From Pelomyxa schiedti (taxonomy: Eukaryota; Protista; Evosea): a stretch of DNA of 64,000 nt. The translations under genes were made by a program, and so were the position numbers. Under the pieces are notes generated by a model. The model did no database searches, was not told where the DNA came from, and saw only the letters and a list, made by a program, of their open reading frames with translations. Below, in pieces: positions 3,783 through 62,632 of this stretch (its first letter is position 1; each line of letters begins with the position of its first letter). Location: positions 4,127 through 68,126 of the forward strand of contig JAHLWZ010000865.1 of assembly GCA_020536535.1 (NCBI GenBank), read 5' to 3'.

Positions 3783-4956
3783 CTAGGATCTTTTGGTGTT
3801 CTTTAATATCTCCTCACGCTCTCTTTCGTAGACACGCAGTTCTGTTGTATGCAGAAAGTTGGTTTTGTCAATGTACCTGTGGGGGGTGGTCATTTGAGTG
3901 ATTGGACAAATGAAGCAAAGTACCCTGAGCCGGATTTTCTTCTTTGTGCAAGCTGATCAGATATTCCTTGCTTCTTTTGGTATTGCTCCCAGTCGAGTTT
4001 GGATTTTTGAAGGGTGGACATTTGCTTTTTCTGAGGCTTCAATATACTCTGAAGACCAGAGTTCCCTCTTGGAAGATATGTGTTAGGCACATTTCTTGGG
4101 AAGGATTAGGGTACCTTTTTTGTGGGAGAAGCTTGGGTTCTGCCTGGTGGAGGGTGGAACGGGTGGTAGATAATGTTGTAGAAGATTTTGTGGTTGAAGA
4201 AGGTTTAGTAGAGGTCGGAATTGTCTTTGTGACTCTCACTTCTTCCCCCGCATATTCGTACACTTCTGTTATGGTTACGGGAGTTGAAGACGGATTTGGA
4301 TTTGGTGAAGGTTTGGGTGTAGAATCTTTTGGAATAGGTTTTTCCGAAGAAGGTGTGGGGGATGAGGTCGGTTCAGTATGCGTTTGAGGTGAGTTGAGTA
4401 ATGCAGTTACTGGAACAGTTGGGTTAGGTGGTGAAGTTGGTGTATTAACAGAAGCGGGTGTCTTCTCTGGGGTGTCGGATTTGATGGTAGTAATTGTTGT
4501 ACTCGAAGTGTCTGTAGTTTTTACTGAATCAGTTGTATCTCTCTGGGGCACAGGGCGAGACTGCACAGAATGTTGTTCTGGTGGTGTTTGGGAAATGGGT
4601 TTGTTGGGCTATGTTGCAGTTAAAATTCAAAAAAAAGAAAAGAAAACTAAAAAATTAAAAAACCTTTGCCCCTTGCATTTCCTTCCACATAGCAGTTACT
4701 CTTTTTCTTGTTTCTGTTCAAAATTGTAACCCAAAACACCATAAAGTAGTAAGTAGTACCTTCACTGGTCTTGGTTGTTGATCGAACCTCATCTCTAGCG
4801 ACAACAAGTCCTTCACATTTAAAACGAACATACAAAAACCACCAATAAATTGCACACTCACCTCCCCTTGTCGCTCCCACTTTCGCCACTTTCCTCCTCG
4901 CTATCGTCGTCGCTCTGAGGCTCGAACTCCTCGTCGTCTTCTTCACTGTCGCTCAT
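3783..4956 (-). CDS. BCNT/CFDP1 family protein (SWR1 complex subunit Swc5-like)
   Basis: Acidic N-terminus MSDSEEDDEEFEP; ITEVYEYAGEEVRVTK; BCNT-C domain MSTLQKSKLDWEQY..ISDQLAQ..GYIDKTNFLHTTELRVYERERE. Confidence 0.88.
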
Positions 4957-5037
4957 GCCCCCGATAATAATGGATAGCTTTTGAAAAGAAACAATCAAGC
5001 AGCTACAGGAAAGCGTTTCCTAATCTATTTATTGGGT

Positions 5038-6413
5038 TTACTCTTTTGCCTTTTTAACGGGCAGAGAGAAGCTGCCGGTGTAGGAGGTGTGCTTGACTTT
5101 CTTGTGTTTGCCGGCTTTGTCTGTGGTAGTTTTGCCGGGTTTAGCAGTTGGGGCCTTGGCCTTATCCTTGGACTTTACTACTGGAGTCTTACCAACAGCA
5201 GCGGCAACAGAGGCAGCCTTTTGCTTCTCGAGCCTGTACCTTTCCTCCTGTTCCTCCAGGATAGACTTCCGCACACCCTAGTTAAAGAGATTAGAAGAGA
5301 GATTGGGTTCAGAAACTAAGCATGCCTTGCCGCGAGGGAGGGTAATGAGACTCTTGCTTCCCTTTCCAATGCAGAACACGTTTCCTATTCGGGTGGAGAA
5401 CTCATGGCCAACGGCGTCCTTCAGGTGGATAATTTCAAAACTACCTGGATGACGCTCGCGTCGCATGATCAACCCCACACGCCCAAGGTTGTGCCCGCCA
5501 GTAACCATAGCCAGGTTACCTATTTTATGGGATGGCATTCAGTATTTATTTTTAACACTTTCTTTTTGGGGGGAGTACCTATTTCAAACTTGACGAACTC
5601 AAGAAGCTCATGAGTCTCAATGTTGTACTTGACTGTGTCATTGGCATGAATTTCGGGGTGTGGGTAGCGGAAAGTCCTGCCATCATGTGTAGAGATATAA
5701 GGAACACCACCTTTCCCTGTGAAACGCTCCCTGACACGAACAAGTTTGTACTGAGGTAAATGTGAGGGAAACAAGTATGCGGACCTAACAAACCTTTGCC
5801 TCTGCATCACTGATCCTGTGAATCACAAAGCGGCCCTTGGTGTCATAAAGGAGACGGAAGTGCTCATGAACACGGTCAATGGAAATAACATCTAACATAA
5901 CTTATGATACAAACGCAAAGTTACATCCTTACCCATGAAACCAGCAGGGAAGCACATATCAGTGCGAACTTTGCCGTCAACTTTTATAAGTTTTTGCATA
6001 ACAATTGCCAGCACCTCCCTCCTTGTCAACGCATATTTCAGGCGATTCCTGAGCATGATGATCAAAGGAAGGCATTCACGGAGCTTGTGTGGGCCACTTG
6101 ATGGGCGTGGTGCCTAAGGAAGTGAGCACAAATAATAGTAATAAAAGTTTCACAAGAAAGGCATTGCACACCACCAACAAAAAGCCATTTTGTGGAAGAT
6201 AAGAATACCCAAACACCACCAAGCTTATCCAGCATCCAATGTCTTGGCGCATTGATGCGCTTCAAGTGCTTTTTGGGGCCACGTGCCTGAAAACGTGTGG
6301 CTCGTTAGGGTGAAAGGAAACAGCACAAAACAGTTGGTAGTTTCAAGTGCGATACGACGTTTTGGTTGATTTCACGTGAAATCTGCGCCACAAGTGTGAG
6401 GTGTAGGCACCAT
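5038..6413 (-). CDS. RPS4: 40S ribosomal protein S4 (eS4) with Lys/Ala-rich C-terminal extension; 6 introns, first coding exon is ATG only
   Basis: M|[26 protein letters not shown]|[14 protein letters not shown]...[10 protein letters not shown]...[12 protein letters not shown]...LPRGK|GVRKSILEE; every junction checked in frame. Confidence 0.97.
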
Positions 6414-24554: not shown

Positions 24555-27500
24555 ATGGCTACGAAAAATCCGACACTTCTTAGAGGGGTGACGATCTACT
24601 TGTCGGCCTCTACGTCGCAAGTGGCTGCAGGATCGTCTAAAGTGAGTGTGTATTCTACAAGATCGGACTTGATGAGAGCCGTGAAAGCCTGTGGTGGGAA
24701 AATATCTTTTGCTCTTAACTCTTCAACCACACATTGGGTCGTTCCTGACTCAAGTATGAGCCTTGCTTCTTGTTACTTTTGAAATACACTGAATCGCTCT
24801 CACGAAGATGAAGATGAATCGTGGCGGGATGTTGCTAAGATTAGACAAGCAACAACCTACTCTACTAAAATTGTAAGGGAATCATGGCTGGTTGACACCC
24901 TGGTAAACAATGCTCTACAACCCGAGGGAGGATATGCACCTCCCAAAGATGACAAGTGGGCCAAGCACCAACAAGAGTGGGATGCTTATCACGCAGAACT
25001 ATGGGATGATAGCACCGACGAAGTAGAAGAGAGAGTGATTGTATCTAGTGCCCCTGAAACTGTTCAACCTACTGAAGACTGTGGTGTGTAAACAAATTCA
25101 GCATTGTCTCCTTATTTCCCTCAGGTCCTTGGCCAACAAGCACAGCCGGACTTCCATCTGTAAAAGTTTCTACATTCAAATTGGCTGACAAGTCCCAACC
25201 CCGCTTTCCTGAATCTTTTTCAACTTTGAAAAAGGAGGTTCTTCAGGTTTTCCCTCTCTCACCTCAATACTCATATCTAACATGAGCTCAAAGTGGACTG
25301 ATGTCAAATCAAACCACAATAAGGTTGAACTCTTCTACGAAATTTGTTTGCTAAAATTTGCAGTACTATGCCATTGAAGTACACAAGGGTGCTGAGGGTG
25401 GCAAAACAGTATGTTAACTCAACTACTCCCCGAATCTGACCAGATTAACAGCAATTCCGTGTTTTCACTCATTATGGGTTTGATTTGCAGGTGTTTTTAT
25501 TTTTTTTGCCTAACTGCCTTCAAGACGGACAGATGATCTTGTGAAAAACCCAATGGCTGGTCAACGGGAGTGTAGATATATTAACTCTCTGGAGCAAGCT
25601 AAGGCCCTCTACGCCTCCATATATCAGGAGAAGACAGGAAAGAAAGGCTACAGGCCAGTGTCAATGTCTTCCTCAAGTATAGGTTTCCCCAAGGTATTCA
25701 AGATATTATTGCCCGCTTATAACCAAGTAAAGGCATCCAGCACCTCTGAAACTCAAGAAAGAGCGTCGCACCCTTTAACACCGGTGGAACAGCTTGTCTG
25801 GTACATTTTTGAAGAGGTTTTTCCACGTTCTTCTTCAGGGAATCTGAATCAGCTCTCAGGCCACTCAAACTATGACAAGCATTGCTGCCGTAACTATCAC
25901 AAGCCGAGGCATTGAAACACCTTTAGGGTTGCTGACTGTGGAGCAAATTAATAAAGGAGAAGCTGTTTTAGAAAAGATAAAGACTGCTTTGTTAAACTCT
26001 AAAGTAGGCGGCATACAAACATTGAATAAACTCTAACGTTCCACAGGATCTTTCACTTCTTGAAGACTTATCCGGAGAATTCTACACAATAATTCCACAT
26101 AGAATAGGTATTCTGCCTTACAGCACAAAACTTTGCTAATGTGTGTTAGGAAGATCACGTGAGGAAATTCGAGCGGCAGTGATAAAAACCCAAGAGCAAC
26201 TCACACAAAAGGAAGAACTACTTCAGTTGATGAAAGATTTGCTTCAGGTACATCATTTAATTAACATGTTGATGACCTCATAATTTCAGGTTAACAGCTC
26301 AGGAGCATTATCTAGTACCGCCATTTCAAACAAGTACCATGCTCTTAAATGCTTCATAAAGGTTTCATTTCAGTTATTTTGCATGCCTCACTTATGTTAT
26401 CCTTAGGAACTGCCACAAAATTCTTCTATATTTCAGGTTGATGTTTTTTCCTCAGTCTTACATTCCTCTCACTGGAGATAGGCTATTAAAAATATTGTAC
26501 TCAATTCCCAAGTGAAAAATGAGGGGATTCAAGTTGAAAGAATTTATGCCTTGAAGGTTTCCTATTCCCATTAAAAACAAATAGCATCTCATTTGGCCTA
26601 GAAACCAACTGAGCATGAACGATTCGAGGCGGGAATCACACCTCATGTGATCTTACTCATTCCTCACTGTCTTTACTGAATAGTTTCCCTAGGATATGTT
26701 GTTTCACGGTTCTAAAATATGTAACTGGGTTGGAATTCTTTCAAGAGGACTCCTTCTTCCAAAGGTTCTGAATCAGTCTTATCCTGCCCTTTTGGTAAAT
26801 TTTGCTAGTCTGTTGTCGCACTTGGAGGGAAAAGAACAGATTATGGATTGCTTGGTGGTGGCTTGTATTTCGCTGGTTCTGCCGGTGCCTCCGCAAAATA
26901 TACATCCACTGGGTCAAGGGGAACAAGGTACAGGAAATTTGGAGAAATAAACTCTAATTTTCACTTTTTAGGCTTATGCTTGTTTGTCGAGTGGCACTTG
27001 GATCAGTTTATGATACCAGTTTAGAACAGCCTCAACTAATGAAGTAAATGGGCTATGGGCTTTGTGGGGAAGATTAAAAACACAACTAAGTTCAAACAGT
27101 CCTCCAACAGGCTTCCAATCTGTGCATGGTGTACCAGGGCCAGGTTCATTTGTTGGTATGTATTACCATCAGCCACTGAAAACCTCTGATCTACAACAGA
27201 TGACGAATTTGTCGTTTATGACTCAAACCAATATCGCTTTGAGTATCTTGTAGAATTTAGGTATTTTTCCACGTTCGGTACCTTTCTTTCGAACAGTTTT
27301 TCTGCAGCCTTCCTAATGACGCACACTCTTCAAGTACACACACCGAACCCATACTTCCCAAGGCAATCTCGACAAATGTACATTGCCTCTTAATTCCCCA
27401 GTTTGAAATGTATTAGGTTGGCAACGCACTTCCCATTCCTAAAAAACCTCTTCCTACTGAGAAAACAGAGGCGCCCCACAGACCCCAACTGGAGCAACAA

Positions 27501-30500
27501 ATCCCAAAATCTGCAAAGCAACAAAGGCCCCTTTCACTAAAAGAGTGTATTGGGTCTGAAAATTTACGTATCAAAGAGGAGGAGGACAGATTGCGGTAAG
27601 AATTTCATGAAGTGAGCATGCTAATAGTATCCCAGACAGCTCTTTGCCAACTCCAGAAATAGTAGCGAGCTCAGAAATGATTTTTTGCACTGTGTAAATG
27701 TATTTAACAATACTGAGAAGTTTTTATATTCGGATCTCTCCAATGAAGAGGTTGGAATGTTTTTGTATTTAACATTCCCTAAATAAGTACAGAATCTCCC
27801 AATGATTTTGAACTCCAGTGCACAACCCAAAGGACGCTCAGCTATTACTAGCAGCCAAGTGGACTTCACACACAAATTCAATTCTTTCACTTCCAACATG
27901 TTTGAAAATTTTGACTGGTCCAATGTTATTGTGGCGGGTGGTTGTGTTTTGGCTTGCATGTTGTCCAATCCTGGAACCGACTATGACAGGTGCTACTACA
28001 TTCACATAAATCTTTACTCATAACCTCCAAGCTCTGATATCGACATGTTTATTTACGGGTTAACTCAAGAACAAGCCAATGAAAAAGTATTTTCACTCTA
28101 CAACACAGCTCACTAACAACAAAGCAAGTTGAGGTACATATATAATTCTGTGCATTCAGCTGGGGCCGAGTGCATTCGAACGAAAAATGCAGGTAAGAGT
28201 CAATTGACTCCTCTCAGTGTGTCTGACTGGAACAAGTTACCATTTTGAATCAGCACCCCAGAAGGCATATTCAGATTGTGCTCAGGTTTGGGCAACTCTC
28301 ACACCAAAATTGACCCTGAAATTATAGAATCTACATGAGCCCCGCTGAAGTACTTCTTGGATTTGACATAGACTCTTGTAGTGTATGCTACGATGGAAGA
28401 AATGTCTGGGCAATCCCTAGAGCCATCCGAGCTCTTACAAAGAGGTCTCCTTCCCTCAACCACAACCTGTGCTAAAATTCTTCAGATACAATTTAGTGGA
28501 CATGTCCCGAAGGTCTCTCACTTATGAAGTCCGGTATTGGTCTCAACTTTTTTATTTCCTTTGATCTCACTGTGTCCACAGACTGTATAAATATAGCAAA
28601 AGAGGTTTTGCTGTTGCTGTGCCAAATTTCTCTAGGTAAGAATATTTGTACTTGAAGTTTCTCACTTTCCGTAGAGATCGAGTGGATCCCGAACTTTTCT
28701 CCAAATCTTTAAGTCAAGTATCTGGCCTAGGTCAAATCTCAACTCAACGCAAGTGAAATTAACACTCTTGTCAGGAAAGCTTCTGTTAATGGAGTACCAC
28801 TCAACAAAATCTCCCGCAAAGGATAATGACACAATTAAGCGGTAACACCTCTCCTTACCGTATTTACCGTCTTACGTTGAAAAGAAATAGTGACGGCCAG
28901 CGTGGCTCTCGTGCTCTTTTCAGTAGTGACAGAGTGGCGTGGGAAGCGACCCATAACAATGAAACGCAGTCTGATTATGCTGATGTTATCATCCCCTGGG
29001 GTCCTCATTGGGTACCTAGTAAAATACTCAAGTTATTGAATTACAGGTAGCTATGAAGTCTGTAGGGCAGTTTTTCTTATTCCCTTTGCAGAGACAAAGC
29101 GTTCTTCTTCTCACAGAAGACCCCTGATCAACAATTGAAGCACAGACACATATTTACAAGTACACCTCTTTCCTACCGATTAAAATATTCATGCCCTTTC
29201 AGGCGGTATAGATGGAATCCTCTCAGGGAAGTCCTGCTGGTGCAAATGGTGCACGGAAAACTGGAGCGGACCCATCAATGGTGCTACACATGTATTGGGA
29301 CCAATTTCTTGGTTGATGGAGAACCCGGGCACACAGTTATTAACAGGTAATGACCGCCTGGTTGAACACTTTTCTTAGAACGATGAAGGAAGCTTTCATC
29401 CCGTCTCTGACGATCTCTGGGACGCAGATGCTTATCGCAAACCTGACGCAGGTATGAACCAAAGATCTTTCTCCTACACTAACCGGTAAAAAAAGAGACC
29501 CACAATGCTCTCTGTGAGGCTTGTTTTTCTGGGGACTATGAAGCCATCAGACAAAGTTCGGTAACAACAAATCAGCTTGCAACTCCATCGTGTGTCTTAT
29601 ATTTGACTCCCCTGGCTCTTTGCATGGCTGGTGCTGCCTCGTCATCTCCATCCGTCCTCGGTTCAATTGATTTCCTCATGTCCCATCACTCCTCTCCCAC
29701 AACACTTCCAACTAGTCCAGCTCACAAGGTGAACAACCTCACTCATCTGGCTGTCGCATCCTTCATTGGGAATCCGGCAGTAGTCGAAGCTTTGCTCCAA
29801 AAGTGTGGTGGCACATCACCCTCAAGGACACCCAACGCACCACCACCACTTCACGTGGCAGCATACTATGGCAATGTAGAATGTATGAAAAAACTGCTCG
29901 CTTCTGGGTGCTCCCCGTTGGAAACAGATATGAATGGAAGGTGTGCAGTACACTAAATAGAAGCCAATTCTAATCCCACTCAGAAATGCCCTTCATCTTG
30001 CAGTAGCTGGGGGAAATATTGAAGCTGTGAACCTTTTATTGAAAGATGCCTCAACAGGGTCCCAAGCGAAAATGGCGCAAGATAACGGCGGCAAAACCCC
30101 TTCCCAGTTTGCTGAGGAATGTGGAAATAGGGGTATCTTAGAAGGGGCAAAAGTCAAGCCATTGGATTCTTCTCTTAAGATCATAACCAAAAGCCACAAG
30201 GTATCCACTTCCGCCCTTTGCATCGCCACTTACTGGAGAAGGATCCTTCTTTAGACGTTTTGAGCTGCTGTCTGAACCCCTCCGAACTTGCTCGAGCACT
30301 CGCTAATGGTGGGGCCTGGGATCAAGCGGACTTGTTTGGGGTTTCTGCTTTGCACAGTATAAGATGTCAAAATGTTTCCTTTCGGCTTATTCTTCTCAGT
30401 TGCGTGCCTTAATGGCATTCAACCCTCAGTTGAGAGTCTTATCAAGGCAGCTCAAATGAGTAGTAAACCTCCAAAGGACTGTTATGGACAAGTATTACCT

Positions 30501-32054
30501 TCACAATTTTTCTACTTACTAATATTCACTCAGACCCCACTTCACTATTGCGTCATGCAGGTGAGTCTCAACTGTTTTTTTTTTTTTTTTTTTTCGTTGA
30601 GGTGCCTTTTTCCAGGCGAACTTCCTTGCTATGAAAACTATCGCTTCCAAGTTCCCACAGTGGCTAGACATTCCCAACTGGTCTGGACAGTCACCTCTGT
30701 ATTATTGTCTTGCACTCCGATGTAGGTTATGTAGTTTTGAAAACGACATCATGAGCGGGTATGGCTATTGTCATCAAAGTCAGTACATTTCCTTCCCAAC
30801 TGCTTAGGTTACCAACAGTCACTATGAAAAGTGGCTGGGAGGAAATGAAGAACTACTTTTTGTCGGCTGGAGTTGCGGTACCTGCAGTTTCACCTTACCC
30901 AATTCCACCTCTGCCCGCTTCACAATTTCTACAGAAGGTATCGCCTCCACTACAAGCATTCCTCTAAGTGAAGTTTTAGATGGAAACCTCTTGTGCTGAC
31001 TCTGTACCAAGTTGCATGATAAGACTGCAACAGCGATTACAACACCAAGAGAAAATCAAACCCCAGGTAGCACTGCATAAGCACATAACTAAGGTTTAAT
31101 GTGTTAACTAGAGCCTCCCAACAAAACCCGAGCAATTTGAGAAGAAAAAAATCACCAAACCAATGAAATCGGCTCACACAACAAAAGCAACCTCTGACAA
31201 GCCTTTGAAGAGGGAAAAACCCATCAAGAAGACTGAGGCTAAGCCAGAAAGGAAAAAGCCGCTCCCAAAGAGTAAAGCGCCCGCTTTTGGAGCTAAGTCA
31301 TCAGCATTTGGTGGTTCTGGAGCATCCTCATTTGGATTTGCACCTGGATCTTCAGCCTTTGGGTCTGCGTCGTCTGCATTTGGGGTTACTTCAGTAGCAG
31401 CACTACCAGAAAAGGAGGAAAGAAGTTCTTCTTCTTGGACATTCAGCAATAGCTCTGCACCCCAGACTAGTTATGCACCAGGAACGGTGTCATTCTCTGC
31501 CCTGAAATTCTCTCTTCCTGCTCAAAAGTCAGTTCCATTTACCCCGCTTCCTTCCACACCAAAAGCGCTGTTCCCCAAACACACTATTAATACATCAGGT
31601 ACCTTTACCCACACCCATCAACTACTAACTGTCACCTTAAGCTTATCCTCTACCACTCCAAACCACCATCCAAGCAATAAGTATGCCACATTTTTCCATT
31701 TACGTAATTTTAACATTACGGTAGCATCACCAACAAGTAGGCTCTCTTCCATTCCTTCCAAGCTCCTTGCAATTATCGTCCCGCTCGCCAAAGGTAAAAT
31801 TCTTCATACCAACATTCTCTCCAAATAAATGTTTATTGACCACAGCCACACCCTCAACAATCATTAACTTACAGTAATGCACAGAAAACCGGATAACCAC
31901 CGCGGAGAAGAACGTGTTGAAGGAAATGACCCTCACGTGGCCGCTTCCTCCCCAGCTCACAGCAGCAATGGAGGCCTTTATCCTCGATTGGGACATTGAC
32001 GAGCTGGCCGACACCCTCAAACGTCTCGTTGTACTACAACACCACAATTTTTAA
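24555..32054 (+). CDS. Multidomain PARP: BRCT - WGR - PARP regulatory - PARP catalytic (H-Y-E) - nucleotidyltransferase-like - ankyrin repeats - FG-rich tail - small helical C-terminal domain
   Basis: BRCT (GGKISF..THWVV..IVRESWLVD); WGR (NHNK|YYAIE..VFTHYG|R); TPLGLLTVEQI..EFYTIIPH; LFHGS (His 26705), GLYFA (Tyr 26866), DDEFVVY (Glu 27205); WSNVIVAGGCV..SDIDMF..FDIDSC..RLYKYSKRGF; PLHVAAYYG/ALHLAVAGG repeats; stop 32052-32054. Confidence 0.8.
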
Positions 32055-52900: not shown

Positions 52901-55418
52901 AACACTTGAACTAGTCACCAGAGTGGGAAACTCAACAGAATTTGAGAACTTTGAAAGAGCAGGAGCTAGAAAAATTAAACTCCAAGATGAAGAACTCTGA
53001 TCAAACAATCCAGCGGTACTTCTTTTTCGGGCATCCCATTAGGTGACTAATTATTCAAAGACATATCCATGTCTTGGAGCGTCAGGTGGAACTTGACCGG
53101 CAGGAAACAGCGAGGACTGAACTAGGTATAGGATGAAGTGGCAGTAATTAGAATTAACGTTGCCCAATGAAGAGAAAGCTAAATTCTTGCGTCAAGCTGT
53201 CCTCAACTACATAAACAGTCTCAAGTTTGGAGACAAGTATGACATCTCATCTGTGTTCAGACTCTGTTCTCTCTGGTTTTTCAATACCACTGATGATCAA
53301 ATAAATCTCACGATGAAATCTTCTATTCCCCAAATTCAGGTTTGAAAACTTCTATTTTCCCTTCCTAACTCACTCAGTCCCGTAAATTTATACCTTTGAT
53401 ATACCAAATCGCTTCACGTTTGAGCTTAGAGAAAAACGAATTTCAGGTGCAACTCTTTCCCTCTATGCCTGCTGCTCACCCCAGCATAGTCCGCACTACA
53501 AGTTCTCCTTGAAAGATGCTCTGCAGATCACCCGCACCATACACTTTGGCAATTATTTGCACTTGCACATGGTGACCGGAGGCAGAAGCAGGACCGTCAC
53601 CATATTGTGGACCAAGATAAAGTCTCAGCCGCAAATGGTATTCCCCCGAAATTTTGCAGGCTTTAACATAAGTTAAGCGATTTTAAACCATCTTCCTCAA
53701 GCAGTAAGCGGGGTTCTTTCTCAAATGAGGCTACTCATAACAGCCTACATAGACGTACTGCTCTCCTATTCCATTACACACTGATGTTTTTAGCTGGCCT
53801 CTCTTGACTTTAAAGGAGACAGCAAACCAAAGGTTCAACAACCCATTCCGTTACCAAGCAACATACGTGTGCCTCCTCTGCACAGTGTTGCTGTACCCAC
53901 TGTGGATACCCCTCTTGACCCCCACTGCAGATATAGTGTAAATGTGCTTTTTAGTACTTCCTTTCCAACGCATTACCAAAGGATATAATATCTGTGGATG
54001 GGTTTGAAAAGACATTTACTATTCCCGGAGGGATAAATCTTCCCAGGTGTATAATTTGCAGAGGTTCTAATGGTGTTGGATATAAACAACTTGTTAAAGT
54101 TACGTTACCAACTTCATATTGCATCTTAACATTCATACAGGGAACAGATGACTTGAGGCAGGACGCAGTGATGGAACAGTTGTTTCAGATGGTCAATGTT
54201 CTACTTACAGAAAGCCACGAAACACGAAAAAGGAACTTAAAGATTCGCACTTATAAAGTAAGAAGATATTGTGGTGTAAACTCCCCAACCTCTCTAGGTC
54301 GTTCCTCTGACTCCGACATCTGGCTTTCTCGAATGGGTGAATAACACAATACCAATTGGAGAATATCTCGTTGGTTCATCAAGGTATTTAGCTGGTATGG
54401 TTCGAAGTTAACTTTACAAAGAGAACCAAATAACACCACTTGCGCTCACGTGAGATTTCACCCCAATGACTGGCGCTCTGCAGAATGCCGGTTTCTTTTC
54501 GCCTTATTATTATTTTTTTTTCTTACCTTTCTTTTTTGTAGGAAGAAGCTTAGTGCCAATGCTCGAGGTTATAAAGAAATATGTGACCATTTTAAGCCTG
54601 TGTTCCATCACTTTTTCCAAGAGTTCTTCTCTACAGCCTCACAGTGGTTTGAGAAGCAAATCTCCTACACCCGCAGTGTTGCGTCAAACAGTATCATTGG
54701 TGTGTAAACATTCGTGATTGAGGATTGCAAACATCATGCAACAGGTTACATTGTCGGTCTGGGAGACCGGCATGCACAAAATATTCTAGTTGACAAATCC
54801 ACGGCCGAGCTTGTGCACATAGACCTTGGAGTTGCCTTTGAGCAGGGCAAAACTCTAAATACTCCTGAACTCGTCCCATTTCGTCTCACACGTGACATTG
54901 TTGACGGAATGGGGGTATCCGGCACTGAAGGAGTCTTTCGGCGCTGCTGTGAAGAGACAATGAGAGTTCTGCATTTAAGACACCAAGCACTTTTGACCAT
55001 ACTTGAAGTATTTATCCACGACCCACTGTATCGTTGGGCTCTGGATCCTTTGGCGGTAAGTAGTCAAATTGTACCATGTCGTCTAATTTTTTCAGGCACA
55101 CCGGAGACAAGGTGACTCTGAAGAAGATTCCCCCAAAGAAAACACATCTGTAAATGGTGAGACTGTTCACCTTTTCTTGTGACTCACAAAAACAAAGCCT
55201 TCCCAGGCAATCGTGACGCCGAGCGTGCATTGTTCCGGTTGAAGTTAAAGCTGCAGGCACTCGAATACGGCGACCCTCTCTCTGTACATTCCACTTCACG
55301 TGCTTCCTCGTTACTCAGAATTCCACAGGTCGAAGGACAGGTTACCCAGCTCATCATAGAAGCAAAAGATCCCCAAAGACTGGGAAAGATGTATCCTGGT
55401 TGGGCACCCTGGGTTTAA
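43925..55418 (+). CDS. ATM: Serine/threonine kinase ATM/Tel1 (PIKK)
   Basis: TAN-like start MSRTLE..LAKERK; FAT region; VFRLCSLWF; GGINLP..KQLVK|[13 protein letters not shown]; [10 protein letters not shown]; [11 protein letters not shown]; [11 protein letters not shown]; FATC end MYPGWAPWV*. Confidence 0.96.
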
Positions 55419-55471: not shown

Positions 55472-57331
55472 TCAAAACAGAGAGGGGAAGACTGGGAAAG
55501 TTCTGGGTCTTGTTGGCGGGGCAGGACGGGTCACCCAGTTGCCCACTGTTTCTATTAGAAAATGTGGCAATAAGTGAAAGCCACTGTTTCTTCCACATGC
55601 AGGGTGGCATGATAAAGCATAAATCCAACAAATTTTTGCTTTCAGGAAAGTCTGGGCAGTTTGGTGACAAGAAATAAAGAACAATACATTAACCTGGAGG
55701 GACTCGCTTGTTTGAAGAGCTTCTATCCACATTTCTCTGCAACAACCAGTGTTGGAGAGTTCTGCACCCTTACTCATTAGAATTTGAACAACTCTAATGG
55801 CTTGAGTAGGTCCGCACAGTCTGTATGCAGAACTGTGCTGTGGAAGACTCCAGTACAAGGCAATCTGTAGAGAAAATACACGGACTTCTGGTTTTTCCTG
55901 GTCATTTACCTGAGCTCCTTTCCCTATAAGGAAAGTTATTCTTTCGGCCCTCCCAAAGAGTGCCGCAGAAGCCAAGGGTGTCATCGTATTTTTCTCTGCA
56001 AATCGCCACTGGGCTGGGGTATCCACAATGTCGGGCCGCACAGCAAGTAACGATTGTATTAGATAATCAGATTGCGGGACCGTGGAGCAGCACAGGTGGA
56101 CAAGCGCCATTGGGCCCCAGTCCAAAGTTTTGCTTCCTGGCTTTGGCCAAGATGCTCCACATTCAAGAAGTGCTTGTGCGGAAGGCCCTTTTTCCAACAA
56201 AATGGCAACAAACAGAGGTTGCAGTGCTAGTCGGGAAGGAATCCAGTCTACGCCCCAGGCACTGTGTGATTCAGGAGTATCAACACAGACCCCCGCTTTG
56301 GAAAGGGCAAGTATACAATGAGGATTGTTCACAACAACAGCCTCCATCAGAGTCTTTGTGCTCGGAGAGACAACGTGGAAAGAGAGTAGCTTCACAAGTG
56401 CTTTTGAGTCAGGAGCACAGGTGGCCAGAAGCAGGTCCTCTTCAGTTACTTTGGCACCAGCTTTGTACAAAGTGCCAAGGCATTTACCGGTACGGTAGGC
56501 ATGATGTATAGCCTTCCGGTTTAGACCCGGATGATATGCGTTTGGTGAGACCCCATTACCAAGTAAAATCTGTTTTCTTCAATTTGGTGGCATTGCGAAG
56601 AATATGCACACCTTGACTAACGTCTTATCATCGCTCTTTATTGCTGCAAATAAAGCCGCCTCGAGCAGGGGGCGGTTTCCCTTGCTGTATGTACAGAGCA
56701 ACGTAAAAATGTCATCCCGTAGCTGTCAAAGAAAAATTATAGTCCTAACAGGTATTTTTTGTTTCCGAGTGAGGAGGTAACCTTGGATGGTGGTTGTTCA
56801 GCACAAAGAGCTAAAAATGTAGTAGAATCTTTTGTTGTGGCACCAGCATTAATTAGAGTATGTACAATCTCAAGAGATTGTGCTTTAACGGCAACACCCC
56901 AAGCAGTTGTCGGACACAGATTGCCCTTCATTCTGAACCATGTAGGAGCAGTTAGATTGGGTTTGTTCCTCTTTACATTGTTTTCTGTTGCACACTTGGA
57001 GCAAATCCAGAGAGTAAACTGCTGGTCGGTCACAACAACACTGTACTCGTTAGAAATTGCGTTGACCTCGCGGTACTCTATCGTCTTTCTCAGAAGCTCC
57101 TCGAGACCCTCTGGAGTCATAAACTGTGACGACGCCAGAATACCATCGGCTACCAACGGTCCCTCTTCATACAATGCCTTGTGTAGTTTCTGCACCAAGT
57201 AGCATGAACAATCAACAGACAAACCCCACAAGAAGAGGGGCACAACAAACTTCGAACATCCTTCCCACAATGAGGTCTGAATGATGTTTCTCAAAGTAGT
57301 TGTAGTTTGTGTTTGCCTCGCTGTTCCCCAT
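55472..57331 (-). CDS. Ankyrin-repeat protein with MG N-terminus, a CxxC knuckle and HPxCG C-terminal motif
   Basis: MGNSEA..; WICSKC..N; repeats TAWGVAV, TLMEAVV, PLFVAIL, TPLASAA; C-terminal SCHPACGRNS..LP. Confidence 0.7.
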
Positions 57332-57454
57332 AGCCCTCAACCCAAAAGAATTTTTTGTGCACAAACGGCCCAGGAAGGCCGTTTCACCCGATTCGTGCAC
57401 ACGGGTGCTAGTGGAAGGAATGAACCAGTTTATTTTTGTTCCATGGGGCCTGCT

Positions 57455-58601
57455 TCAAACTGCAAGGAAAGCCTCAAGGATAGCAGTTTCACCAATTCTC
57501 ACAGTCACGGCATTGGCCAGTCTGGTAAAGTGCTTTGCGGAGGTGGAATTTCCAGCATGTGCTGCAGTTGAGTATTGCGCTTTGAGGGTGGCAAGTGTAT
57601 GCTCAAGGGAGCGTGCCACCGTAGGTATCCAGTTTGGTACTTGCAACTAAACACAGGAATTCCCGTACTTTCCTGGAAGAATAGTGTGGTTAGTTTGGTG
57701 TGGACAGTGGTGGGATTTATGGTTTCTTTCTTACTGGGAGGACTTCAGTTCAGCCGGAATGTACTTGAATCCACCGCAGGCTACATAAAATGCTGAACTA
57801 CTCAATAGATCAGAGGCACGCAGTTTGAGAGATATTCACCTGTAGGACATCCATGCATAGAACGCAGGCAATATCAATAAGTAGTTTTGATGCTCGTGAG
57901 TGTCTTGTCCTTCTTTCCGGGAGCGTTGGTGCCGGCGTTTGCGTTTCTGGGCTGAAGTTATAAATTGTGTATTGCCGCGTTTGATTCGTCCAGCAAAAAT
58001 GCATTCCTGAGCAATCAGTTGGTAGCACTTTTTGCAGCCATTTACTGCGTGTAGATGCCTCGCCTGTGATGTTTGTTTGGGGATTATCAGTAATTAATTA
58101 CGGAACCCAACATACTGGTAAACGATGATAGGCATGGGGTGGTGCAAAGCCAATCCAAGTCAATAGAAACTTTGTCAAATGAATATGGCGTGTCCACAAA
58201 TCCATAGCACCTCAGTAATTCCGAGTTGGAGAGGTCGCCGTACTACCTGAACATAACCTAACCCTAAGTTTTTCCGGCACATGGAGCAAGAATCCCTACC
58301 AGAGCTGAGTGCTGGTGCCGTTGTGTTGATTGGTTGCCTGTCTGGAATTCCTTTGTTGAGACTTCAATTTTCTCCCTCCAAGAAGATGCTCGTTAGGTCT
58401 ATTCGCCTTTTCTCTGTTCCACACCAGCATCAAAACAATGAGAAATAAAAAAAAAATAGATCTGTTGTTATCAAACTCTGGTTTGGTGGTGTTGGTTTGT
58501 TCACAGATGAAACCTGAAAGTTCCAGCCAAGACTCATGCTGCAGATGCAGTGTGAACAGTGGCTGTTGTGTATCAAGGTCAATCAACGTCAAGCTAGCCA
58601 T
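57455..58601 (-). CDS. Rubisco-LSMT substrate-binding-like protein retaining only the last SET motif (5' structure uncertain)
   Basis: Exon near 58240 reads YGDLSNSELLRCYGFV; C-terminus RLANAVTVRIGETAIL; no upstream SET core (NHS motif) found. Confidence 0.5.
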
Positions 58602-58655
58602 GCTTGGGAAAAAAACTCGAATTTGTTTGCGGGTGCGTGGGGTTGACAAAAGTAA

Positions 58656-61415
58656 ATGGGAGCAGCACCCGTTAAAGTGCCAGTATCAGGTGAACTTCGG
58701 TCTCTTTGGGATGCGGTTGCTTCAGGTAACGCAACTCACACTGCTGTCTTACTTGGTCGTGGTGCTTCAATTGACATAAACGCGTACTACAGAGATGGTA
58801 TCGCTTTGTTCCAAGATAAATTTTACATAAAATTCGATTTTAACCCTCCTATTTAAACGCATACACAAAGTGCTCAATGAGAGCTCGACTAGCACACTGT
58901 TGCACTTGGCCTGTAGTGTTGGTAGTGTTTCTATTGTACAACTACTGATTTATGACCCACCGCCACCTCATAAGCCATTCAAAAACATGAATGCACCAAG
59001 GTCACCTGATGACACCTCCACTGCACTATCAGTTGCATGTAGGTTGGGATATGAGGAAGTGGTATGTGAGATAGTGCAGGGACCGCGTGGTGGCGAGGTG
59101 GATGTAAACTACATTACTGCCTGGGGGACACCACTGCACATTACGTGTGCCCTCATTGACCAAGAGAAAGCAGCAAGGATTGCACAGACACTTCTGTCAC
59201 ACCCTTCCATTAAGGTGAATAAGGGTGACGGAAAACACCGCTCACAAAAGCTCTCCTCAAGGGGTCACTCTCAGTTGCACTAGTAATTAAACTGCATGGT
59301 GGTGTTGTCACCCCAGTGAAGCAAGAAAAGGTGGACAAGGCAATGGGTGGTCATGATAAATTTCTCGAGTTCTTGGCTAGCTGTAGTGGTTGCTTGCAGC
59401 TAGCTTGTCCACCTTCTTGCCCAGCTATAGCACAACCCGTTTCATCCTCGTATCCTCAACAACTACCACCAAAGGTTCCCCCCATCAGTGACACCAACAG
59501 AATGAGTCTTACTGCAGACACTGAAACACCACCAGTTGGTACATTCTGCCATTGTCCATTAAATTTATCCTGACCTTCTTCATCAGAAAGGCTCTTGAAA
59601 AACGACGTGGTGAGTGAGCTTGAAATAGATGTTACACCAATGCCACTTGGTATATCCTCACCTTTTCATAAAATGACTAATGACCCATCAGGTAGGCTTT
59701 CTAAGAAGCAAATTCAAGCTGGGTACGAAATTCTCAGACAACTTGAAGTAGCAATCGCCACCCCTGGAGGTGCCCCACAAGGTGTTGTTGAAGATTACAC
59801 CAATCAATTTAATACTCTCATTCCACATGGATTTCCTCCGGTTTTGATTTCCACCACTGATTTATTGAAGAGCCGAATGAAAGTGAGGATTAATCTCCCT
59901 TTTTGAATAGAGAAATAAGCTACCACCAGGCACTTACTGATATGGAAACTGCAAGAACACAACAGAGGTCCGAGGAAAAACACCACCCCTCTGCAGTTAC
60001 CACACCAACACCAGCACATCCACACAAAGTTGGGTTCTCAATTCAAAATGCCAACACAGAGCAGGTCTGTCAGTGGCTCAGCTCCATTGGAATTGAGGAA
60101 GCCTGTTTGAATATCATAAGAACCCACAAACTGCGTGGGAGGACAATCATGAGCTACACAGTGCAGCAGCTGTGTGCTCTTGGGCTTGTTCTGGGAGATG
60201 CAGAGTTAATTGTAGAGGAAATGCGATCCTGTGTGCAGCCCTCTAATGAACCTCACAAAGGTTTCGTCCCTGAGTTGGATGCTCCAAAATCCCCAGGTTT
60301 TTTTTTTTTTTTTTTTTTTTGGGTTCTACACTGATTTCTTTTTTTACTTCAGTTGCATTGCAACTTGCAGGACCAGAGTTGAATTACAAGTGCATGGCAT
60401 TTGTTGTTGGAAATGAGTCTTACTCTCGCCTTCCCCTCCACAATGCCCTTAATGATGCAGCAACTGTCAGTCAAGTCTGTTTTAATTGTTAGGCCACTCA
60501 AATATCGCGCAGTTTCTGAGTGACCACTGCAAGTTTGACGTGACTTCTTTCTCGAATCTCTGCACACTGCTTGATTTTGCCAATCAGTTGGAGCAGTTCA
60601 AGAGCAAGTTAAAGCTTTTAAAGTATGAAGGAAGAAAGGCAAGCACACCAAATGCAACCTCTTTCATTTAAACAAGTTCCAACATTTTATCATGCTCCCT
60701 TTTACAGATTGCAACTATTTTTTACTTTGCTGGACATGGAAGACAAATTGCAGGGCACAACTTCTTGCTCATGACTGGAGACGATTCAGCATACACTGAA
60801 CCCGAATTTGACCTGATGAAGTTCAAGGCACCAATGCTCGGTGATGTGTTGGATGGAATCAAACGGCACTCTGATTTGACAATTGGTATCCTAGATGCTT
60901 GCCGAGAATCTGATACAGCTGACAAGGATGAATTCAGGGTGTGCTACAACCACTCATTCAACTTCATCTCACAAAAGCAATTTCTTAGACGCGTGGATTT
61001 GGAGGCACCCAACTCTGTATGGAGGCTTTTCCAACTGGGTGCATTGTAATCTATCCTACAAGCCCAGGTTTTTCTAAAAAAACTACCAACCCCTCTTGCA
61101 TTGTGCTGCTTTTAACTACCCACAAAAGGAAAGAACACCAGAGATACATGCAAATTGTCCAATAGGCATAACCATGGATTTTTCACTGGATGCCTTCTTG
61201 AAGGTAATCACCACGCATTATAACAACAGGCAATCAATTGCAGCCACACCCATACCAACTCACTTTTGCACCATGCAGTTCTTGAAGGAGCAACACCAGG
61301 GACAGCATTCAGTGACTTGATTGATGACACTATGACCATGGTACAGTCACTTTCCAAAGGAGAACAGTGCCCTTGGGTGTCAAAGAGTGTTGGGACTCGT
61401 TTCTCTCTCTTCTAA
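58656..61415 (+). CDS. Ankyrin repeats - PARP regulatory domain - SAM - caspase-like peptidase C14 fusion
   Basis: ANK (TLLHLAC, TALSVAC, TPLHITC); MPLG|RLSKKQIQAGYEIL..NQFNTLIPH; SAM VCQWLSSIGI..LGLVLGD; AFVVGNESY..L.NALNDA, FYFAGHG (His 60735), ILDACR (Cys 60900), YPTSPG, HGFFTGCLL, QCPW; stop 61413-61415. Confidence 0.85.
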
Positions 61416-61673: not shown

Positions 61674-62632
61674 TTGCAGGTTTCACCACCCGACGCGTCA
61701 TCCCTACTCGTGTCAGTCGACGCGTGCGTTCGCGGTGTTCCTTTTTGGGTGTCAGACCCAGCCTCGGCTGCGTCGGGAGGGGTTGTTTCGGTACCTCCTT
61801 GGTGGGACATCAATAGCCCACTTGACGTTGCGAGATGGACCCCACTTCATGTTGCTTGTCGCAACGGTCACGCTGAACTTGTGCGGGACATGTTGCGTGA
61901 CGGAGCATACCAATTGACCCGAATTTGCCCGACAAGTATGGCGATACTGCGTTGGTTCTTGCTGGCCGTATGGACCACACAGATGTAGTTGCGGTACTGC
62001 TGAGCCATGTGGGGCAAAGTGGTGGTGGTGGCGGAAATAATGAAGGGGGGAAGATATTGATTGATGTGGAAAAGGGGTGCCCATTTCACTGGGCTTGTAG
62101 CTACGGCCACGTTAGAGTGGTTAAGCTGATGTTGGCGTGCCCAATGGTGGATGTGAACCGGATACCACAAGAGGGAACAGTCCACTTGCAGGCTAAAGGA
62201 TTCCAGTTGCCGGTTCTGGTCTGCCCTTCTCCCTTTTTTTTTCTCCCAGCTAACCAATGCATAGATTTTGTGACAAGCTGCTGTTATGTTCAAGACTTCC
62301 GCTAGTTGGCAGCAAACTTGGTTTGTCCCTTTTATTGGCTTTCTGCTTCTAACATCCACACAGGTTCGCATGACAATTATTTGATGTACGCACCTTTGCC
62401 ACTTGCCAAAGAGCAAGAGAGTCTGCCTGCAGGTTTGTTCTTTCCGCATGTCTTATTTTATTTTATTTTAATTATTTTGAAGAGTACAACCGCGACAGCC
62501 TCTCTGTTACTGGACAACCAGCGGGAAAAAAAAAATAAATTATGTCTTCCAATTTGTAGGCAAGATCCCCAATTTGTGCCCGATTTGAGAATGCTCAAAG
62601 CGGTGCCACTTTGAAATTCCTCCACTTTGTCC
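61674..62632 (+). pseudogene. Frameshifted ankyrin-repeat gene fragment
   Basis: WTPLHVACRNGH continues as IDPNLPDKYGDTAL only after a 1-nt frameshift near 61905, with no room for an intron; further stops downstream. Confidence 0.55.

Follow-up and report, generated by a model that had tools for sequence, protein, structure and literature searches.

The closest described relatives of the gene analysed here are found among caspase-like proteases of peptidase family C14, namely the bacterial orthocaspases and the paracaspase MALT1, and among the helical domains of PARP1-3. The gene belongs to Pelomyxa schiedti, an anaerobic archamoeba, and lies at positions 58656-61415, on the forward strand, of a 64,000-nucleotide stretch of its genome (contig C865:4127-68126, GenBank JAHLWZ010000865.1), hereafter called the window. 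Its predicted product combines, in this order, ankyrin (ANK) repeats, a piece of a PARP helical domain (the Pfam family PARP_reg, PF02877), a SAM domain and a C14 protease. All coordinates refer to the window unless another contig is named, and genome-wide searches covered the 52.4-Mb P. schiedti assembly. On the contig, the gene occupies 62782-65541. We describe the gene as an intact member of a large SAM-C14 family that has taken up a PARP helical-domain piece without the enzyme which that domain normally serves.

Bacterial orthocaspases, such as those of Ideonella, Vibrio and Paraburkholderia, share with the Pelomyxa protein the C14 signature composed of GN..Y, NDA, FYFAGHG, ILDACR, PG...D and QxPW. 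They often carry repeat or sensor domains at the N- or C-terminus, and clusters of ANK-C14 proteins exist in bacteria. In contrast, the Pelomyxa gene has 11 introns, a SAM domain directly upstream of the protease and a PARP helical fragment, and the Pelomyxa proteins form an amoeba-specific clade on a long stem. Another relevant system is MALT1, which is activated by oligomerisation. MALT1 (structures 3UO8, 3V4O and 8V4X) is the best sequence-profile and fold match of the amoebal protease and has the same His-Cys dyad and acidic S1 positions. However, identity is only about 18%, the Pelomyxa protein has neither a death domain nor Ig domains, and SAM would take the place of CARD/BCL10 filaments as the activating scaffold.

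To our knowledge, the only role known for the PARP helical domain is that of a built-in brake of PARP1-3, where it contacts both the WGR domain and the catalytic fold. The Pelomyxa piece shows clear homology to this domain and has an intron in common with one of the true PARPs of P. schiedti, but it is neither preceded by a WGR domain nor followed by a catalytic domain, and its helices are incomplete; for these reasons it cannot autoinhibit an adjacent ADP-ribosyltransferase. Tankyrase also places ankyrin repeats before a SAM domain and includes a PARP-family element, although that element is the catalytic domain without the helical one, while in the Pelomyxa protein the helical domain is present without the catalytic one and a protease forms the C-terminus. 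This resemblance is one of layout only, and the Atlas look-alike score of 0.77 lies under the trusted level. By analogy only, the protein also recalls plant NLRs with integrated decoys and SARM1-type effectors, in which a variable recognition or decoy part, an oligomerising domain and a proximity-activated effector are combined within expanded families whose N-termini are shuffled. Unlike those systems, the Pelomyxa protein contains no NTPase or TIR domain.

Gene model and domain content

Read from genomic DNA, the predicted gene has 12 exons totalling 2109 nt, that is 702 codons plus a stop, and its frame runs unbroken from the ATG at 58656 to the stop at 61413-61415. The introns are 38-92 nt long. 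Ten of the eleven are GT-AG introns, and intron 8 (60639-60707) is GC-AG, so that the canonical splicing claimed by the original prediction holds for the in-frame join of the domains and for ten introns but not for intron 8. A GC-AG intron is normal for P. schiedti, since 1.59% of introns in this genome, which averages 7.4 introns per gene, are of this type (PMC8887013). Single cells subjected to whole-genome amplification were the source of the assembly, and its annotation relied on Augustus, PASA and EVM (PMC8887013). The gene is already present in GenBank as 'hypothetical protein Pelo_13013' (676 aa). The deposited model agrees with the 12-exon model in the start codon, in the GC-AG intron and in the joins between the ANK repeats, the PARP piece, the SAM domain and the protease. 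A single gene with this domain order, as originally proposed, is consistent in frame and matched by the GenBank annotation.

The two models differ at three places. Intron 2 has two in-frame options, 59225-59316 (92 nt) or, in GenBank, 59215-59261 (47 nt), the latter adding 15 residues. In intron 7, GenBank uses a donor at 60466, 9 nt upstream of that of the 38-nt intron used here. The 38-nt intron fits better, because it gives a gap-free alignment to the paralogs described below, whereas the GenBank donor opens a 3-residue gap against all of them. The largest difference is at the 3′ end, where Pelo_13013 passes the donor of intron 10 unspliced (61068-61165) and stops at 61165 after 30 intron-encoded residues, thereby losing exons 11 and 12, the conserved p10-like part of the protease. 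Both exons recur in 11-12 paralog loci, at 52-83% identity, and correspond to the C-termini of the paralog proteins, which indicates that the deposited protein is truncated and that the real C14 domain is complete. For protein-level searches, residues 1-645 of Pelo_13013 were taken as reliable, and the single exons together with Pelo_13013 stood in for the joined 702-residue model.

All four predicted domain types were recovered when the exons were scanned with Pfam hidden Markov models (Ank 2.7e-11, PARP_reg 3e-13, SAM_1 2.7e-5, Peptidase_C14 3.1e-4), and the quoted sequence motifs are all in place. On Pelo_13013, PARP_reg reached 2e-18 (67.2 bits against a cut-off of 26.8), Peptidase_C14 (PF00656) 7e-10 (39.4 bits against 21.4; 54-133 bits in paralogs) and Ank 4.7e-9, with Ank_2 at residues 18-117. 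Exon 1 (58656..58797) holds the start codon and the first ankyrin repeat and ends at the donor G/GTATCG. Exon 2 (58871..59224, or to 59214 in GenBank) continues the repeats, of which the gene has 2-3, with scores above the Pfam cut-offs (Ank 43.5 bits; Ank_2 42.9 bits, 7.3e-11). AnkG/LegA7 was rejected as the family of the gene, as its score of 29.6 bits against a cut-off of 500 reflects generic ankyrin similarity. Exon 3 (59317..59538, or from 59262 in GenBank) encodes a Pro-rich linker unique to this gene and matching no Pfam family. For neither the ANK region nor this linker was a close paralog found in the P. schiedti genome.

The SAM domain lies at 60050..60214, inside exon 6 (59930-60296). 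SAM_1 scored 24.9 bits on this exon, above the cut-off of 23, and 21.3 bits (E 3.4e-4), under the cut-off, on the whole of Pelo_13013. A profile built from the paralogs matches the solved SAM domains of liprin-beta, CNK2, DGK-delta, SHANK, SAMHD1 and SARM1 (4.6e-8 and weaker), and the region thus combines a profile match with homology to the five-helix SAM fold. A predicted complex of three SAM copies scored 0.02, and the program returned no answer.

A PARP helical-domain piece without a PARP

The piece comprises about 100 residues and is spread over three exons. Exon 4 (59587..59649) contains its start and ends in ...EIDVTPMPL-G before an intron of 42 nt, exon 5 (59692..59882) contains the core of the domain, and the first eight codons of exon 6 (59930..59953, ALTDMETA) carry its 3′ breakpoint, after which the same exon continues into the SAM domain. 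On Pelo_13013, the match spans positions 21-125 of the 135 in the PARP_reg profile. The original prediction of a PARP1/2-type (WGR-clade) regulatory domain is borne out by this match and by a profile match to the solved structure of PARP1 (5e-13), with the qualification that both ends of the domain are cut off. It lacks the first helix and the final part of the last one, which leaves the helical bundle incomplete. The piece maps to about residues 685-767 of human PARP1, to which it is 38-39% identical over some 85 residues.

The absence of a PARP catalytic domain was confirmed, as no PF00644 match was found on the contig in a genome-wide profile search and the protein ends in the C14 domain. 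The P. schiedti genome contains nine PARP_reg loci, eight of which adjoin a PF00644 match on the same strand; only this gene does not.

The nearest relative of the piece is a true PARP on contig C308 with the architecture WWE-WGR-HD-ART, HD being the helical domain and ART the catalytic one. Exon 5 is 73% identical to it at the protein level, seven of the eight residues at the start of exon 6 are the same, and the DNA of the piece is 67% identical. The homology begins at about ...ELEID, leaving out the first helix of the C308 protein, and ends after ALTDMETA. The helix ...SVQELVTAICDI of C308 has no counterpart in the gene. In both genes, a phase-1 intron follows directly after MPL-G at the identical position, which implies that the piece was copied as genomic DNA and not as cDNA. 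Judging from these sequence features, the piece came from a WGR-type PARP paralog. It is set apart from C308 by two 3-residue deletions and a slipped donor site.

Over 90 aligned codons, the proportion of synonymous differences between the gene and C308 is 0.75, which is saturated, and the nonsynonymous divergence (dN) is 0.18, giving a ratio of nonsynonymous to synonymous divergence (dN/dS) of about 0.04. At 50 columns conserved among PARPs, 32 are unchanged; the gene has 4 unique changes and C308 has 2. Saturated synonymous sites combined with a low dN/dS argue that the capture is old and that the piece has been kept by purifying selection.

The AlphaFold2 model of the piece has a mean predicted local distance difference test score (pLDDT) of 76, and three helices exceed 90, as does the exon 5 core. 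Foldseek ranks PARP1 helical domains first among its matches, at a root-mean-square deviation of about 5.5 Å.

The combination of ANK, PARP_reg, SAM and C14 was found nowhere else in the databases and literature that we searched. In a phmmer search of 1.84 billion representative proteins with the PARP piece, the gene itself was found at 3.5e-39 and the next match at 3.5e-9. Among the 25 longest of the remaining 40 matches, 24 contain PARP_reg, mostly as WGR-PARP_reg-PARP proteins or fragments, and none contains C14 or SAM. The look-alikes in the ESM Atlas are ANK-C14 clusters of bacteria and arthropods, none with PARP_reg. Our literature search found no description of the protein, of its SAM-C14 family or of a PARP_reg-caspase fusion. 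The module was proposed to be undescribed, and this stands for its architecture, while the gene itself had been deposited as a hypothetical protein. One database protein of 531 aa contains two WGR and three PARP_reg stretches, and a PARP catalytic domain is missing from its Pfam matches; either the protein is a fragment or it is a second case of a helical domain lacking its enzyme.

The protease

The protease begins in exon 7 (60353..60474), which encodes VVGNESY and NALNDA with the first acidic residue of the S1 pocket, and continues through exon 8 (60513..60638), whose GC-AG junction is the same in Pelo_13013. Exon 9 (60708..60938) contains the catalytic core, with the His at 60735-60737 (FYFAGHG) and the Cys at 60900-60902 (ILDACR). 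Exon 10 (60989..61067) encodes a linker with a conserved RG (RTRG in most paralogs) followed by PTSPG. The p10-like part follows in exon 11 (61129..61203; conserved Asp and NHGFFTG), which is 54-83% identical in 12 paralog loci, and the domain ends with QCPW and the stop in exon 12 (61279..61415; 52-72% identity, 11 paralog loci). The paralog proteins share the terminal ...RF(A/S)LF with the exon 12 product.

The His-Cys dyad is intact and invariant both among the paralogs and in the amoebal-bacterial alignment, and its residues align to H415 and C464 of MALT1. Together with the conserved last exons, this upholds the complete C14 protease proposed at the outset. An AlphaFold2 model of a paralog C14 domain that is 64% identical (pLDDT 86, predicted template modelling score 0.86) matches MALT1 and the caspases over about 255 columns, which points to a complete caspase fold including the p10-like part. 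MALT1 ranks first (E 1.6e-14, template modelling score 0.71), ahead of caspase-3, -7 and -8 and CED-3, and no metacaspase is among the top 50 fold matches of this model. A structure-profile search gave the same first match, with MALT1 at E 2e-3 and metacaspase-1 at E 0.18.

Outside Pelomyxa, the nearest matches among 5.8 billion proteins are bacterial or metagenomic 'caspase family proteins' (28-34% identity, E down to 2e-19), including proteins of Ideonella, Vibrio, Paraburkholderia, Humidesulfovibrio and Bacteroidales. The best 120 of these protease matches include no named eukaryotic protein from outside Pelomyxa. Type I metacaspases are marked by an N-terminal Pro-rich or zinc-finger prodomain and the active-site motif D(S/C)CHSG. 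The Pelomyxa protein reads DACRES at this site and hence falls outside that class. It also differs from a MALT1-type paracaspase in that Pfam recognises only Ank, PARP_reg, SAM and C14. On the evidence of its motifs and of the fold model, the protease is a bacterial-type, MALT1-like C14 peptidase, where 'bacterial-type' refers only to best matches and shared motifs (FYFAGHG, ILDACR and QxPW). The orthocaspase/paracaspase affinity suggested earlier, as opposed to that of a type I metacaspase, agrees with this. Assignment to a bacterial defence family was rejected, because the NCBIfam and PADLOC matches are far below threshold (caspase_w_EACC1, 18-35 bits against 140; PDLC02987).

Residues invariant in the joint amoebal and bacterial alignment are G18, D33, H91, D144-A-C146-R147, D193, Q242 and W245. 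D33 and D144 align with D365 and D462 of MALT1, and by its position D193 presumably corresponds to E500; these three acidic positions form the S1 pocket of MALT1. Since all three are invariant Asp here, the enzyme probably prefers to cleave after Arg or Lys rather than Asp. After the catalytic Cys, R160 and G161 are invariant in the paralogs, and in the paralog model the linker around them has pLDDT below 50 (residues 153-171). This invariant Arg-Gly in a predicted disordered linker is a plausible self-processing site.

The SAM-C14 family of P. schiedti

The original prediction did not notice that the gene has many relatives in its own genome, in which the SAM-C14 part is joined to interchangeable N-termini. 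Its catalytic exon has 30 matches in the P. schiedti genome, 24 of them at E <= 2e-12 with 50-77% identity, which makes the gene part of a lineage-specific family with 24 or more paralogs that have the SAM-C14 module in common. When 12 paralog loci were compared, the caspase exons had the same order and the same boundaries, with exon 8 missed by tblastn in three of them. The SAM exon was found in 11 of the 12 loci, and the annotated protein of the twelfth contains a diverged SAM domain according to Pfam. A phylogenetic tree of C14 domains groups nine members of the family in a single clade (support 1.0) with a long stem. Several contigs carry two or three copies.

The N-termini of the family differ from one another and consist of Sel1, MORN or LRR_6 repeats (the last annotated as 'NLRC3/NOD3'), of a Ras/Roc GTPase with TRAPPC13, of ANK repeats or of nothing recognisable. 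In the paralog on contig C562, the TRAPPC13 middle domain and a complete Ras/Roc GTPase precede the SAM-C14 part, and housekeeping-type domains are thus represented as well.

Proposed mechanism and alternative explanations

A constant SAM-C14 part joined to interchangeable N-termini, most of them repeat or recognition modules, suggests a logic of binding, clustering and proteolysis. The variable N-terminus, here the ANK repeats and the PARP piece, would bind a partner; SAM-SAM contacts would then cluster the protein; and clustering would activate the protease by proximity, probably with a cut at the invariant Arg-Gly of the linker that follows the catalytic Cys. As partners of the PARP piece, the likeliest candidates would be one of the WGR-type PARPs of the host or a microbial factor directed against PARPs; in the latter case, the piece would serve as a decoy. 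Conflict with microbes or regulated cell death would be the likely setting. The decoy or allosteric switch of the original prediction and its possible role in immunity or cell death are likewise hypotheses. Since the N-terminus differs from paralog to paralog, the PARP piece more probably serves in recognition or as a decoy than in a specific allosteric lock with the protease. We give a probability of about one half to this reading as a whole, that is, an intact family gene with a selected PARP piece, in which N-terminal binding would lead to SAM clustering and protease firing.

Several points weigh against it. The dN/dS value sums both lineages, so that the constraint is in part that of the true PARP. 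The piece is without its first helix and the end of its last, and has suffered two 3-residue deletions. With three confident helices and a deviation of about 5.5 Å from PARP1, its autonomous folding is uncertain. Finally, the gene is a singleton with no ortholog, known from one draft genome obtained from amplified single cells.

Some of these points would also suit a PARP piece that is a mere passenger, an exon-shuffled, truncated and non-autonomous spacer between the ANK repeats and the SAM domain with no PARP-related function. Truncation at both ends, the deletions, a Tyr-to-Asn change at a highly conserved position, a predicted packing that deviates from the PARP1 helical domain, the singleton status and the free exchange of N-termini within the family are all what such a spacer might display. 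However, a neutral spacer of this age should no longer be recognisable, whereas the piece retains 73-77% of its residues at saturated synonymous sites with a dN/dS of about 0.04, keeps 32 of 50 conserved helical-domain columns and preserves both splice sites flanking the captured exons; we therefore consider a passenger doubtful. The retained surface, together with the descent from a WWE-WGR-HD-ART protein and the contacts that the helical domain of PARP1-3 makes with the WGR domain and the catalytic fold, could instead speak for a component of a PARP pathway, as opposed to an immune sensor, in which the piece docks on one of the eight WGR-type PARPs, at its WGR or its catalytic domain, and couples DNA-damage or NAD signalling to the protease as a damage-triggered death or stress switch. 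Such docking is unlikely, as the helical domain of a full-length PARP itself occupies those surfaces and the rest of the family has unrelated N-termini of the recognition-module type.

An artefact would require two neighbouring genes or an amplification chimera to have been wrongly joined in the gene model or the assembly. Amplification of single cells before sequencing, a second DNA form with a 1072-bp deletion (see below) and the erroneous 3′ end of the GenBank model leave some room for this. Nevertheless, a single uninterrupted exon encodes both the PARP tail and the SAM domain, introns this short could not accommodate a promoter, the contigs of all four runs of one sample are colinear with the region, the SNPs are mostly synonymous (8 of 12) with the sole indel intronic, and 67% DNA identity to the closest genomic relative is incompatible with a chimera of the C308 locus. 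A wrongly joined gene is accordingly very improbable. A bolder extension of the binding-clustering-protease reading is an NTPase-free innate-immune repertoire of at least 24 sensor-SAM-protease receptors built on a bacterial-type protease, in which the PARP helical-domain decoy reports microbial attack on host PARPs. Pelomyxa cells are packed with prokaryotic endosymbionts. We hold this extension to be rather improbable; if true, it would give the PARP helical domain its first function outside a PARP.

Locus integrity, variants and surroundings

The locus was checked with contigs assembled from four runs of one sample; they retain the introns and behave as genomic DNA. The contigs follow the window across the ANK repeats, the PARP piece and the SAM domain and break in intron 6, where about 24 T at its start (60297-60320) interrupt the contigs of all four runs. 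Among the 12 exonic single-nucleotide polymorphisms (SNPs), 8 are synonymous, and the only indel, of 4 nt, falls in intron 7. Runs X3 and X4 contain, at 60387-60626, a haplotype with seven exonic SNPs, four of them nonsynonymous and three of these four clustered at 60428-60440, as well as a CCAC insertion after 60492, inside intron 7. This haplotype may represent either an allele or a paralog that arose very recently.

A rearranged partial copy is located at the end of contig C414 (C414:56000-63152, positions 4072-5986) and corresponds to 57002-58688 and 59759-59946 of the window. It matches the upstream region at 86-92% identity, then passes from the first 31 nt of exon 1 directly to the middle of exon 5 (188 nt at 99.5% identity) and runs into an assembly gap. 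This joint of 58686 to 59759, which skips 1072 bp and is out of frame, also occurs in DNA contigs of runs X1 and X2. A second intact copy was ruled out here, given that the copy is a rearranged fragment ending in an assembly gap; it is probably a remnant or an amplification product.

The surrounding region is rich in ankyrin genes. Farther upstream, at 24555-32054, the long open reading frames that were scanned matched only Ank. Downstream, an ankyrin-repeat gene lies on the same strand (61674-62305, forward), and upstream there are an ankyrin-like open reading frame on the reverse strand (55472-56470) and a PI3/PI4-kinase exon on the forward strand (54714-55115).

Biological meaning

In this gene, a copy of the PARP helical domain appears to have been kept under selection without an enzyme to brake, fused to a predicted oligomerising protease. 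A selected helical domain of this kind implies a second use for the fold, such as a binding surface or a decoy. The family is probably the larger point: in it, a bacterial-type relative of caspases has multiplied to at least two dozen copies that are linked to SAM domains and carry shuffled recognition domains. It has the appearance of a receptor-effector repertoire that evolved independently in this anaerobic amoeba, a little-studied host of intracellular prokaryotes.

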